A stretch of DNA of 64,000 nt from Macrostomum lignano (lineage: Eukaryota). The notes under the pieces are model-generated. The model had not been told where the DNA came from. It was given only the letters and a program-made list of their open reading frames with translations, and did not search any database. Location: NCBI GenBank assembly GCA_002269645.1, contig NIVC01000255.1:434001-498000 (forward strand). The letters run 5' to 3'. Shown piece by piece: positions 15,409 to 32,872 of this stretch. The position numbers and the translations under genes are program-made. Numbering within the stretch: position 1 is the stretch's first letter; every line of letters starts with the position of its first letter.

Positions 15409-18400
15409 TCATTGCACCAACAGGGGCGGCCGAACTGCTGGTTGCTGACAATCTCGAAACCGCTGCTCTCCACCTGCCTGCACGGCCTCCGGGCTGGTGC
15501 GTCGAACCCTGGCCACTGCCTCGTCGATGGTGAGCTGGGTGCACACTCGGATCAGCTCGGGCTGCAGTTGATCAGCATGGTTGCTGCTGATACATTCGTA
15601 TGACCCAACAACTCAAACGGAACTTTTGAAATGTTTCTTTTACGATTAAGATTCATAATATTCAGATTCCCGTTAGCGGTTTCTTTCATTTTCAGACAAT
15701 TTCTTGAAACAACATTCAATTTACGCTTTATTATTATTTTTTGATAACATCACAGCGTACACGACGCGACCTTGTTAGTCATTTCTTAGTTCACCTTCAC
15801 TTGTCTCTGTTTGCTCTCCCCTCTCTGTCTTAGTTCAGTCTCGATATTTTTTTCTCTCTCCCTCGCAGCTCTCTGATTGGCTCTTTGACCTCGCCTCTTT
15901 CTTTGTCGGGCAATCCACCCCTCCTTGTCTTATCTACACTTAACCTCCCTAATTAAATGCCTTAGACATACTCATTCGGGCCCGGCGCCGCACTGGCCGT
16001 TTTGTTTATTTTTAATTCTAATTAAATAGTTTATTTATTTCGCTACAGTACATGAAAGACGGCAATGCTACTCACGTCCTTCGCCAGCAGGGCCCAAATC
16101 GCTTGAAAGTCGTTAATCTGATCGGCCATGGTCCCAGCAGCTCTGCGGATTAGTTTGGCTTTCAGTTGCGTGTCCCGACAGAATTCCAGCGTTGTCAAAA
16201 CCTCCTGAGAATCGTGACTCTGCAAAGAGTCTTCGAACCATACAGCCGATGTTGAAGTGTTGACAATACTTTGATCAAGGCAGAGAAACTTGAACAGGGC
16301 GTTGAAGTTCAAGTAGTACACGTTGACGTAGAGTATGCACTTGGGGAAGAGCTGTCTTGCATATTCGGGAAGCATGGAAAGTTGCAGAGGCTTGTTGAAG
16401 ACAAAGCAGAACATCCAAGCGGAGTCAACACTTTCTAGGTGCCTTTTGACGCTTTCCTTCAACAACTCGGGGTCTGACGATGGATCGTTCACGGATATTG
16501 GTACTCCCTTGGAAACCTGGTGTCCGAGACAAGCGCGCAAGATCTTCTTGGCTTCATCATTTTTCCCGAGATCCAATAAAGCCAGCGCTTTCAGCGTTTC
16601 TCGCGCGATGCGAGCAAAGTCAGGAATCTTGGAGAGATTGCGCAGCAGGTCGCGATGGCCAACATCTCGACTCTCGGCACTGGATAAACTGAGTAGGGCA
16701 TCCCGCACTGCCGTGTACACTTCGTAGTAGTACAGCGGGGTGTCCCGTGAGTAGTTCAGAGATGGCGGCGAAGGATCTGGTACCAGCATGAACGGGTGAA
16801 ACACCAAATTGCCTCCACCAACCAGAGGTTGCAGCTGATCCTTGAACTGTCTCAAAAAGCCAATGAGGTTTGCCTCAATCGCCGCCACAGCCTCCGCAAT
16901 TTGGCTTTTCTCGTTGTGATCAATTTTTAAATAAAGCGGCGCGTCACGAAAGAAGAAGTGGCTCATGCACTTTGAGGACTGAGGCTCTTGCAGTAAGGCC
17001 GTTCGCAGCATTTCAAGAGCGATCCGGACTATCTTGATGAAATTTTCAACCTTCCAGTCATCGCGCGGTATCTTGTCAAGCAGTTGAAACATCAATGTCT
17101 TCGCGTGGTAAGACCTCAAGCCTATGGCTCTTTTGCTAATCTCTTCTTTCACCAGGTCTTTAATCACGCTGTACACCTGTCCCTGAACAGTAGTCATGCT
17201 ACGCAGAAGCCGATTCTCAAGAAATGCTGCACTTCCTCTACATTTTTTACCTTCCTCACCTGGCGGAGCTGCCTTAACGACGTGATACGGATAGTTCTTC
17301 AAGTCGCATTTGAGCTGTTCGATGATGTCTTCAGGAATCTGGGTAGTGTATCCCGGCTCGAGTAGTTGGATTCGAGGATAGGTGCATAGCTTGAATGCCT
17401 GCACAAGGTCAGTTGCAGGCCTCAGAATAGAAAATCCGTCCCACGACTGAGCTGGCTTGGAAGCTGTGGGATATGATAGGTAATAGGAAACTAAGATAAA
17501 CTAAAAACAGGATTTACCTTTACAACCTCTTGAACTTGACATCCACCGATCTCACCCTGTTTGACCACCAAGAGACAGGGGTGACCACCAAGAGACAGGG
17601 GTGACCACCAAGAGACAGGGGTGACCACCAAGAGACAGGAGCGACTACCAAGAGACAGGGGCGCACACCAAGAGACAGGGGTGACCACCAAGAGACAGGA
17701 GCGCCGAAGAGACAGTGGCGCACACCAAGAGACAGGGGCGACCACCAAGAGACAGGGGTGACCACCAAGATACAGGGGTGACCACCAAGAGACAGGAGCG
17801 ACTACCAAGAGACAGGGGCGCACACCAAGAGACAGGGGTGACCACCAAGAGACAGGAGCGCCGAAGAGACAGTGGCGCACACCAAGAGACAGGGGCGACC
17901 ACGAAGAGACAGGGGTGACCACCAAGAGACAGGGGCGACCACCAAGAGACAGGGGTGACCACCAAGAGACAGGGGCAACCACTAAGAAACAGGGGCAACC
18001 ACCAAGAGATAGTGGCGCCCACTAAGACACCAAACATCGGTACCCTTAGGGTTGCAGCTCCTCCAATTAAAATTTCCGCGTATCCCACTGGAGTGCTCAA
18101 AATCGGCATGCGACTTACTTATTCCAGAGATGCATAAATGACCTTGGAAATACTCAAAAGTGTTCCGTGCATCGTGTTTACGCATAGCAGCTGCAACCAA
18201 TGAATTTTGGGCATCGATTGTGCACTGACATTGTTCTTTGATGTGGAATAATGCCGTGCGGTTCAAATCAACTATGTCCACATCTGATTGCAAATCCGTG
18301 ATGCCATTCATTCTTGAGCGGTTGTTGCCCCAACACTCGGCGTAACTTCCCACTATATAGATGCTTTCACTTTTCCACCTGGCTCGTAGGATGTCCTGCT

Positions 18401-31700: not shown

Positions 31701-32872
31701 TAGATACAATGGTAATGTTAGACACTGTAGTACTCACCTGTTAGACACTGTAGTTTTCACCTGTTAGATACAATAGCATTCACGTGTTAGAGACAATAGC
31801 ATTCACCTATTAGATACAATAGCATTAACCTGTTAGATACAATGGTATTAACATGTTAGACACTGTAGTTTTCACCTGTTAGACACAATAACATTCACCT
31901 GTTAGACACAATAGCATTCACCTGTTAGACAATAACATTCACCTGTTAGACACAATGGTATTCACCTGTTCAGCCCAATGCTTATCACTGACCTTTGTTA
32001 TCCTTCAGCAGCTCCACAACAGCTTTATGATGCCCCAAGCAGGCGGCAAGCAGTACAGGTGACAGGCCCCGATCATCCAGCAAGTGAGGATCGCAGCCCG
32101 CAGTCAGCAGGAGGCAGCTCACAACTTTGCTGCAACCCTTCGATGCTGCATAGTGCAAAGCTGACCAACCTTGATGGTCCGTGGCGTGAGCATCAGCACC
32201 GGCCTTGAGCAGAGTCCTGACAGCCTCCAGATGTCCGTAGCCAGCTGATATGTGCAGTGGAGTCACCCTGCCATCGTATGTGGGTAAATCCACTTGAGCA
32301 CCGGATCGGATCAGAACATCTAGAGTGGTGGACAGGCTCTTCTCAGCAGCCGAGTGCACCGGGCTGTAGCCTTGCCTGTCTCCCAGGTCAACATGGGCTC
32401 CGAATCTCACCAGTAGCTTTGAGCAGTCCAGGTGACCGTTCTCAGCGGCAACGTGAAGTGACGACCTACCAATTTGATTCTGCAGGTCCGGGTTCGCCCC
32501 GTGTTGCAGAAGGTAGTGCAGAGTTTCTGTCTGACCCTGCCAGGCAGCTCGAAGGGCTGGCGTGTTGCCAAGCGAGTCTCGAACATTCGGATTGGCTTTG
32601 AACTCGATCAGCAGCTTGACGACATTCTGGTGACCTCGCCAAGCTGCGAGGTGCAAGCCTGTCCTGCCATTATTATCGACAAGGCTGTCAATGTTGCAGT
32701 TTAACTTGGTTAACAACCGCTTTACCACTCGCGAATTGCCGCTGGAAGCTGCTTTTAAAAATTGAGTCTTCAATTCCGATGAACTGACCGCGCGAGGGCT
32801 TGTCGTTGTCTTCTTGCCATTCCTGATGGTTGACAGCAGCCGTGACAGCAGAATTGACCTCAAAATTAACAT
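25764..32872 (-). CDS. Ankyrin-repeat / cGAS-like receptor (Mab-21 nucleotidyltransferase) fusion protein, paralog 2 (~950 aa)
   Basis: Exons 32872-31993 (8 ANK repeats; donor AAG|GTCAGT, phase 1), 30351-30240 (phase 1 to 2), 29670-29303 (VMGSFAEAWG...DADVDVV, phase 2 to 1), 27766-26367 (DLIPAF, LRFSTSFLE, LKTYHVKT, MMHFFMPD; donor GTAAGT) and 25862-25764. The first four sum to 2760 nt in frame. The ATG and last exon are less certain. Confidence 0.87.
26160..26325. repeat. ~33-bp degenerate minisatellite (GTCCCTGGCTCCCAGTCCAGT...), related to 29775-30190
   Basis: Visible tandem units in the last intron of ANK-cGLR2. Confidence 0.75.
27859..28325. repeat. 195-bp exact direct duplication (27859-28053 and 28131-28325) inside an ANK-cGLR2 intron, with a duplicated acceptor at 28327-28378
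   Basis: The two copies read the same base for base; 28327-28378 repeats 27730-27781. Confidence 0.9.
28377..29290. repeat. ~0.8-kb (GATA)n microsatellite grading into (GACA)n
   Basis: Directly visible. Confidence 0.98.
29775..30190. repeat. ~33-bp minisatellite GTCCCTGGCTGTCTAGTCCAGAAATGCTTTGGTA
   Basis: Tandem array in an ANK-cGLR2 intron. Confidence 0.85.
30655..31975. repeat. 23-bp minisatellite CACCTGTTAGACACAATAGCATT (~55 copies)
   Basis: Fills most of ANK-cGLR2 intron 1. Confidence 0.95.

Follow-up and report, generated by a model that had tools for sequence, protein, structure and literature searches.

The cGAS-like receptors (cGLRs) of animals were catalogued by Li et al. 2023 (bioRxiv 10.1101/2023.02.22.529553; PMC9980059), who listed approximately 3,000 of them and named fusions to ankyrin repeats (ANK-cGLR) and to tetratricopeptide repeats (TPR-cGLR) as minor architectures in Fig. 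1C and S2A. One entry of their domain table (Table S2), PAA86972.1 (BOX15_Mlig012742g2), carries Ank_2 matches at residues 49-228 and 206-295; the same accession appears in Table S3 as construct 89 of a 140-enzyme screen, with a sequence that begins GFSERSARAQ, and four further cGLRs of Macrostomum lignano are constructs 90-93 of that screen. The locus described here lies in a stretch of 64,000 nucleotides (nt) of the M. lignano genome (assembly GCA_002269645.1, contig NIVC01000255.1, positions 434,001 to 498,000), hereafter the window, to which all coordinates refer unless another contig is named, and it comprises two genes, A and B, arranged in tandem on the minus strand. The 399 residues displayed for construct 89 in Table S3 are an exact substring of the gene B product (residues 355-753); gene B is PAA86972.1, with the same fold, catalytic motif set and family as the published entry, and the screened protein is gene B without its ankyrin arm and linker, its displayed part extending approximately 100 residues into the C-terminal domain. 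Annotation of the genes, the published ANK-cGLR architecture and the cloning of gene B are prior knowledge; to these the present analysis adds the arrangement of exons, gene A as tandem partner, a family-wide extension of the loop between the catalytic GS and DxD motifs (GS-X20-DxD), the C-terminal domain and evidence of selection. Each gene encodes an ankyrin solenoid with a linker, a nucleotidyltransferase, and a C-terminal domain without known relatives. We consider it probable that A and B are old tandem paralogues of an ANK-fused cGLR family, being signalling nucleotidyltransferases that are switched by a ligand and are predicted to make a second messenger.

Both genes consist of five exons (A, 20299-15409, 927 amino acids (aa); B, 32872-25764, 952 aa), with GT-AG introns throughout, spliced open reading frames (ORFs) free of internal stops and the same intron phase series, 1/2/1/0. 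Over 880 aa the two proteins share 37% identity (E 6e-166), and a tblastn search of the window with both proteins detected no third copy of the gene. The exons are as follows.

20299-19489, minus strand: gene A exon 1, start codon (20299-20297) and ankyrin arm, aa 1-270; GT donor at 19488, phase 1.
19412-19364, minus strand: gene A exon 2, 49-nt linker; acceptor ttttcag, donor gtacgt, phase 2.
18501-18119, minus strand: gene A exon 3, nucleotidyltransferase N-lobe; GSYAE at 18350-18336, DVD at 18284-18276, DVDIV match to 18270.
17463-16076, minus strand: gene A exon 4, DLVQAF at 17410-17393 (third catalytic Asp), RGSAAFLE, SYHAKT at 17113-17096, HFF at 16960-16952, with Mab-21_C; the family-specific C-terminal domain follows at approximately 16870-16076.
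15561-15409, minus strand: gene A exon 5, an optional 3' exon encoding a 50-aa tail and stop; donor gtgagt (phase 0), acceptor ctgcag.
32872-31993, minus strand: gene B exon 1, start codon (32872-32870) and ankyrin arm, aa 1-293.
30351-30240, minus strand: gene B exon 2, 112-nt linker; acceptor tttgcag, donor gtgagt, phase 2.
29670-29303, minus strand: gene B exon 3, nucleotidyltransferase N-lobe; GSFAE at 29504-29490, DVD at 29438-29430, DVDVV match to 29424.
27766-26367, minus strand: gene B exon 4, DLIPAF at 27716-27699 (third Asp), RFSTSFLE, TYHVKT at 27419-27402, HFF at 27266-27258, with Mab-21_C; the family-specific C-terminal domain follows at approximately 27176-26367.
25862-25764, minus strand: gene B exon 5, 32-aa tail and stop; donor gtaagt (phase 0), acceptor ttccag.

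The assignment of the enzyme core to the cGAS/Mab-21 family, as had been put forward in a preliminary description of this DNA, was borne out by sequence and by predicted structure. Mab-21_C (PF20266) was matched with 32.4 and 46.6 bits in the two proteins against a cut-off of 24.1, and a phmmer search of the PDB with the enzyme part of gene B returned Sp-cGLR1 (8gjy) first (E 5e-5), followed by many cGAS entries and by MAB21L1. Alignment of the family profile with human cGAS by hhalign, for which the cGAS sequence was taken from Table S3 of Li et al., gave a probability of 98.8% and an E of 9e-17 over 175 columns, and paired TDLIPAF with SVDITLAL (the third Asp), RFSTSFLER with WRLSFSHIEK, KTYHVKT with SSYHVKT, and HFF with NYF. 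A full-length structure was predicted by AlphaFold2 (AF2) for P0167, the NCBI protein which is 98% identical to gene B, using an 82-sequence alignment, with a predicted local distance difference test score (pLDDT) of 87.1 and a predicted template modelling score (pTM) of 0.83. As the Foldseek list of this model is swamped by its ankyrin arm, matching only ankyrins (ankyrin-B/R) and designed ankyrin repeat proteins (DARPins), the ANK-less family member P0005, which is 36% identical to both A and B, was folded instead as a proxy for the window proteins (pLDDT 91.8, pTM 0.91). The best 50 PDB matches of P0005 were all cGAS, Cv-cGLR1, Sp-cGLR1, MAB21L1 or MB21D2 (best E 1.7e-8, target-normalised template modelling (TM) score 0.44-0.56), with no OAS or poly(A)-polymerase structure among those 50, and Foldseek against viral structures gave no match at E <= 0.001. 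By this proxy, the prediction of a bilobal cGAS/Mab-21 nucleotidyltransferase fold holds for the window proteins. The fold is shared with Sp-cGLR1 (8gjy), Cv-cGLR1 (8gjw) and vertebrate cGAS (for example, 4k97) at a Foldseek probability of 1.00 and a target TM of 0.5-0.56, as are GS, [DE]x[DE], the third Asp, R-x-S..E, SYHxKT and HFF/YF, albeit at only 12-16% identity, and the window proteins differ from these enzymes in their additional ankyrin arm and C-terminal domain of approximately 270 aa, in a longer loop after GS and, in comparison to cGAS, in the absence of the zinc-ribbon insertion from the family alignment. MAB21L1 and MB21D2 (5eog/5eom, 7lt1) have the same superfamily fold and were ranked lower by both Foldseek and phmmer.

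The active-site pattern h[G/S]S...[D/E]h[D/E]...[D/E] is present in both proteins. In gene A it is formed by GSYAE at aa 338 (G338, S339), D360/D362 and D433 of DLVQAF, followed by SYHAKT at 532 and HFF at 583; in gene B the corresponding elements are GSFAE at aa 387 (G387, S388), D409/D411, D471 of DLIPAF, TYHVKT at 570 and HFF at 621, so that the core of either protein retains R-x-S...E and [ST]YHxKT, by which nucleotides are contacted, together with HFF. These motifs had been described beforehand, correctly as regards GS-X20-DhD, DLVQAF/DLIPAF and HFF; the distance from DxD to the third Asp, given as 59-70 residues, was one short, and is 60 aa in B and 71 aa in A. Alignments of 80 and 82 sequences, non-flatworm relatives included, showed that the G, S, D, D and third D are invariant or at least 90% conserved, and the same holds in the C-lobe for R..E, Q, K, Y..K, W and F; the signature GS[FY][SA][ED]GWG[NS]SL..L.G.....SD[IV]D was present in the majority of the 80 database proteins that were checked first. 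The loss of acidic residues that marks the Mab21L type was not seen, as the triad and the GS are kept family-wide, and for this reason the genes are not placed in the inactive Mab21L-type subfamily, unlike Mab21L1/2/3, which according to Li et al. 2023 are without a predicted functional active site. The loop following GS is approximately nine residues longer than in cGAS (GS-X11-EFD) and bears the family-conserved GWGNSL..L.G; in the P0167 model the GS helix spans residues 387-391 and is preceded by a strand at 383-386, a loop that is ordered (pLDDT >90) leads on to the strand bearing DxD at 409-415, and this predicted order is that of cGAS. The presence and conservation of the catalytic residues suggest that the enzyme is functional, and are evidence for function as distinct from proof of activity.

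The N-terminal arm of both proteins is made up of 7-8 ankyrin repeats; in gene B seven of them are canonical and are capped N-terminally by a helix pair. Pfam Ank families were matched in A and B with E values down to 1e-49 (Ank_2 9e-49 in A and 1e-46 in B; 5-6 Ank stretches), and the P0167 model has eight regular helix pairs at residues 31-291, with a pLDDT mostly >90 from approximately residue 70; tandem 33-residue helix-turn-helix repeats and Ank profiles together place the arm among the ankyrin-repeat proteins. The linker of gene B is modelled as a helix and approximately 20 disordered residues (pLDDT <50 at 313-332). The pTM of 0.83, obtained for a chain of 952 residues that includes a disordered linker of 20 residues, suggests that the ankyrin arm is predicted to pack on the rest of the protein, and such packing would fit either autoinhibition or co-operative ligand binding. 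Between A and B, the ankyrin arms share 42% identity, the enzyme cores 41% and the C-terminal domains 36%, and as the arms are no less alike than the cores, they are not specially diverged, contrary to what had been stated of them.

Exon 4 had been described simply as a Mab-21 exon, which is accurate for its Mab-21_C part but overlooked a separate, conserved domain of approximately 270 aa that follows (A, residues 613-877; B, residues 651-920). AF2 predicts a confident fold of helices and a small sheet for this domain in the P0167 and P0005 models, and its conserved motifs are HPF..LP, LPDCA.TARE.L.AL..LK.G, DSAWKFCF, FLP, FP, NF.AL and D.D.QEL. A profile search of the PDB with this domain gave a match at chance level only (E 0.71), and Pfam gave nothing above cut-off in A or B; assignment as a tetratricopeptide repeat was considered and rejected, TPR_8 being found in A only, under the cut-off (E 0.019), with nothing in B. 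The matches from organisms other than Macrostomum span only the Mab-21 core positions in the exhaustive search described below, and among the matches that were traced the C-terminal domain occurs in M. lignano proteins only; P0082 and P0093, which are weaker and untraced, also cover it.

To determine the extent of the family, a profile of exon 4 was searched exhaustively with HMMER against 1.84 billion representatives; 612 matches reached E <= 1e-3, and 64 of these reached E <= 1e-30. The family comprises at least 60 clusters and has been seen so far in M. lignano only: all 10 strong matches that were traced are from this species, and those of the weaker matches that are named belong to a bivalve and a sea anemone. 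Mab-21_C was detected in 44 of 52 strong representatives and ankyrin repeats in 36 of the 52, with up to approximately 1,000 residues of repeats, so that the fusion is the norm for the family. Genes A and B, at approximately 36% identity, are only marginally each other's closest relatives as compared to 35-37% identity with other members, and the tandem duplication is therefore old. Two members, P0059 (PAA59752.1, 1099 aa) and P0166 (PAA80948.1, 1444 aa), which are encoded outside the window, have gene models in which a Mab-21-like domain is followed by ankyrin repeats and these by a caspase domain (Peptidase_C14, E 2e-25), and either a genuine fusion of cGLR and caspase or a chimeric prediction could account for this; in another model, P0019, a Mab-21_C match is joined to Delta/EGF repeats, and this model looks chimeric. 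Most platyhelminths were reported by Li et al. 2023 to have no cGLR beyond Mab21-like proteins, making Macrostomum an exception in its phylum.

In the mechanism that we propose, binding of a ligand would switch the enzyme on, leading to synthesis of a nucleotide second messenger (a cyclic di- or oligonucleotide), and the ankyrin arm and/or the C-terminal domain would contribute ligand or partner binding, or autoinhibition, as opposed to catalysis. The charge of the core is close to neutral, for which reason the ligand that activates it may be something other than nucleic acid. Several observations weigh against this interpretation. The N-terminal Mab-21 model of Pfam (PF03281) gave no match in A or B, and hhalign with the N-lobe alone, while placing GS on GS and DID on EFD, required two gaps and was weak on its own (E 0.04). 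The X20 spacing exceeds that of cGAS by approximately nine residues, and the geometry of the active site could differ. The isoelectric point (pI) of the core is 7.19 in A and 7.72 in B, against 9.07 for the catalytic domain of human cGAS, and nucleic-acid-sensing cGLRs have a pI > 8.5 according to Li et al. 2023; acidic, auto-active cGLRs are described in the same article, and the pI of the core is therefore informative of ligand type and not of cGLR membership. The role assigned to the ankyrin arm is a hypothesis, drawn from the architecture and the high full-length pTM, and pattern recognition by A and B, with sensing or autoinhibition by their arms, may likewise only be hypothesized. As to STING, Macrostomum is not in Table S5 of Li et al. 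2023, and Schistosoma and Schmidtea reportedly possess neither STING nor cGAS. Finally, an entry in the Note column of Table S3 of Li et al. 2023 marks an enzyme as active (for example, '01, Pd-cGLR'); this column is empty for constructs 89-93, and none of these is among the 15 active enzymes, which are from insects, anemones, molluscs, hydras and corals.

The published screen also bears on two claims made for these genes in the preliminary description. That ANK fusions were without functional characterisation does not stand, as construct 89 of the screen is the cloned, ANK-less enzyme part of gene B; beyond Li et al. 2023, we found no literature on the function of Macrostomum cGLRs and none on ANK-cGLRs after 2023. 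That the proteins are catalytically competent is suggested by their residues, and is given no backing by the one published test, as far as its tables record. The near-neutral pI and the lack of reported activity of the ANK-less protein with nucleic acids fit a trigger that is not nucleic acid or that depends on the ankyrin arm, and fit inactivity equally well.

Inactivity is what would be expected if A and B were non-enzymatic scaffolds of the Mab-21 type, as MAB21L1 appears to be, the fold then serving as a protein- or nucleotide-binding module from which no messenger is made. The empty Note column for constructs 89-93 in Table S3 is in keeping with this, as are the occurrence of MAB21L1 and MB21D2 among the structural matches and the failure of the Pfam nucleotidyltransferase-domain model to match. 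The conservation of GS, DxD and the third Asp at 90% or more over 82 sequences would, however, be hard to explain without catalysis, Mab21L1/2/3 lack the predicted active site that is kept here, and both sequence and fold searches rank cGAS and active cGLRs above MAB21L1; moreover, the screen, as described, was limited to ANK-less protein and to ligands which were pooled nucleic acids (Li et al. 2023). We consequently regard a scaffold function as unlikely.

A second alternative, which we judge to be about as doubtful, is that the two proteins are active nucleotidyltransferases with another chemistry, making linear 2'-5' or 3'-5' oligonucleotides in the manner of OAS, or nucleotidylating a protein bound by the ankyrin arm or the C-terminal domain. 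The extended activation-loop region and the unique C-terminal domain could be accommodated by such an activity, STING is reported to be missing in other flatworms, and no cyclic product was reported for these constructs in the tabulated results of the screen. Against this, the nearest relatives in sequence and structure are cGAS and cGLRs that make cyclic dinucleotides, and the best 50 Foldseek matches are devoid of OAS and poly(A)-polymerase structures as noted above.

With regard to gene structure, the spliced ORFs, the Pfam matches and the NCBI and UniProt gene models confirm that A and B are two tandem ANK-cGLR fusion genes, as had been described, and the phase series and the junctions 19489/19412, 19364/18501, 31993/30351 and 30240/29670 given for them were exact. 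The fusion had also been called hidden by splicing, which is not the case, as ankyrin and cGLR exons are already joined in NCBI BOX15 and UniProt A0A1I8 models, which are separate sources, and PAA86972.1 is listed as an ANK fusion in Table S2 of Li et al. Gene A is 97% identical to NCBI PAA55751.1 (BOX15_Mlig003219g1, P0002, 888 aa) and to a UniRef model; P0002 shares the junctions of gene A and contains the exon-2 junction peptide YLAFLLT..DW.QNFDERAF, and the exon-5 tail PELIRVCTQ...LLVQ is identical to the C-terminus of the UniRef model P0001. An acceptor cagcag for exon 5 of gene A was rejected as it leads to a stop, and ctgcag/CCCGAG at 15561 fits the C-terminus of P0001. Gene B is 98% identical to NCBI BOX15_Mlig012742g1 (P0167, 952 aa) over a gap-free 920 aa, with the same ATG and junctions, and the 32-aa tail of P0167 is encoded with 100% identity at 25862-25767. 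The exact spliced A and B proteins were absent from a collection of 15 billion proteins. Retention of intron 4 ends the ORF 10 aa later in gene A (stop 16045-16043, with AATAAA just downstream) and 3 aa later in gene B, and use of exon 5 therefore alters a short tail only.

Support for the junctions is wholly computational, consisting of phase compatibility and predicted gene models, and the fusion could conceivably be a gene-prediction artefact, with ankyrin and cGLR exons on separate transcripts and possibly spliced-leader trans-splicing onto exon 2 or 3. Trans-splicing is used by flatworms. Such an artefact would, however, have to reproduce the same phases and canonical sites in two paralogues of 37% identity, the same exon joining in the NCBI and UniProt models, and ankyrin repeats on the same polypeptide in most of the representatives examined. 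In addition, gene B has no in-frame Met from residue 294 to M386, which is one residue ahead of the GS motif, and as a stand-alone AUG could not provide the N-terminal helices of the enzyme, these need the start codon of exon 1; the fusion is thus inferred to be obligatory for gene B unless trans-splicing provides a start. Separate transcripts are accordingly considered very improbable.

A second genomic copy of the locus is present on NCBI contig NIVC01001205.1, where the tandem order is the same, with products of 952 aa for the B-like gene and 927 aa for the A-like gene that comes after it, and with two small genes between them (96 and 75 aa, in the same place as an inverted repeat in the window); a vinculin-family gene, at 1-7551 of this locus, lies upstream of the B-like cGLR on the opposite strand. 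The exons of the two copies align without gaps at 88-100% nt identity, which is at least 97% except for the 49-nt exon 2 of gene A (88%) and reaches 100% for exon 3 of gene B; exon 5 of gene A is past the end of the locus compared. Intron lengths differ up to two-fold between the copies, intron 1 of gene B measuring 1641 nt in the window and 769 nt in the NCBI copy, and its intron 3 measuring 1536 and 849 nt, respectively. The ORFs of both genes are intact in both copies, and dN/dS against the second copy (Nei-Gojobori, NG86) is 0.36 for A, 0.47 for B and approximately 0.3 for the enzyme core, with 27 synonymous and 38 non-synonymous changes where 23% synonymous would be expected under neutrality (binomial p = 0.0007). 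Genes A and B are under purifying selection. The substitution counts against the second copy are too few for a comparison between domains; against the NCBI proteins, changes were found at 15 of 644 core positions and 32 of 1153 positions elsewhere, indicating no domain effect (p = 0.65). Decay of the two genes into pseudogenes amid repeats, for which the minisatellite-packed introns and an exact decoy of the exon-4 acceptor in intron 3 of gene B might be cited, is the least credible of the explanations in view of intact ORFs in two copies, gap-free exons and a dN/dS of approximately 0.4.

The introns and spacers of the locus are rich in minisatellites with units of 15-34 nt, plus (ATAG)220 in intron 3 of gene B, and because the introns are full of such repeats, no long ORF spans either gene. 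The minisatellite stretches are located as follows.

17563-18027: minisatellite stretch.
18598-19311: minisatellite stretch.
20632-21259: minisatellite stretch.
23253-23701: minisatellite stretch.
24663-24950: minisatellite stretch.
25288-25687: minisatellite stretch.
28372-29252: minisatellite stretch.
29779-30172: minisatellite stretch.
30649-31970: minisatellite stretch.
33294-33949: minisatellite stretch.

Intron 3 of gene B also contains exact duplications (27730-27858 = 28327-28455, 129 nt; 27851-28053 = 28123-28325, 203 nt), the first of which includes a copy of the acceptor of exon 4 together with 37 nt from the start of that exon, thereby creating a decoy 3' splice site at approximately 28363 that, if used, would lead into a stop (..DGSTST*). 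Between genes A and B lies a 351-nt inverted repeat (22609-22959 / 24001-24351, 96% complementary), each arm of which contains an ORF for a small protein of approximately 117 aa with a signal-peptide-like start (MLRTAALSLLLLALLLCSTPSVMAAQ...) and no Pfam match. Elsewhere in the window, an ORF of 347 aa at 45218-46258 on the plus strand matches Pfam DUF6944 above cut-off (E 1.6e-8), and no Pfam match was obtained for the ORFs at 323-940, 11592-12914, 13991-14833, 36250-37041, 37377-37985, 42302-43084, 43613-44521 and 50464-51156.

In its general logic, the combination of a variable solenoid with a conserved signalling module, expanded in a single lineage, the family would resemble the sensors of the NLR/STAND type, with their ANK, TPR, LRR or WD40 repeats, and the multi-domain nucleotidyltransferases of the OAS2/3 type; unlike NLR/STAND receptors, the window proteins have no NACHT/NB-ARC ATPase, and the likeness would be a functional one only. 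A more far-reaching interpretation, to which we attach a low probability, is that Macrostomum has retained and greatly expanded its cGLRs within a phylum of which the other sampled members lost cGAS and STING, and that proteins, or further ligands that are not nucleic acids, switch these enzymes on at the ankyrin arm and/or the C-terminal domain instead of in the classical basic groove, with signalling through a receptor other than canonical STING. If true, such switching would explain why ANK-less constructs were not reported active with nucleic acids, the C-terminal domain would be a new regulatory or effector fold, and the output might perhaps be directed to cell-death modules, such as the caspase domain present on some family members.

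For the design of constructs, it is relevant that the ankyrin arm was removed in the published screen, that the C-terminal domain is separate from the catalytic core and that the loop after GS is extended and conserved. If STING proves to be missing from M. lignano, a new receptor acting downstream of the family would be indicated. The locus provides an entry point to the role of appended repeat domains in cGLR signalling, in a flatworm that is transgenic and amenable to RNA interference.

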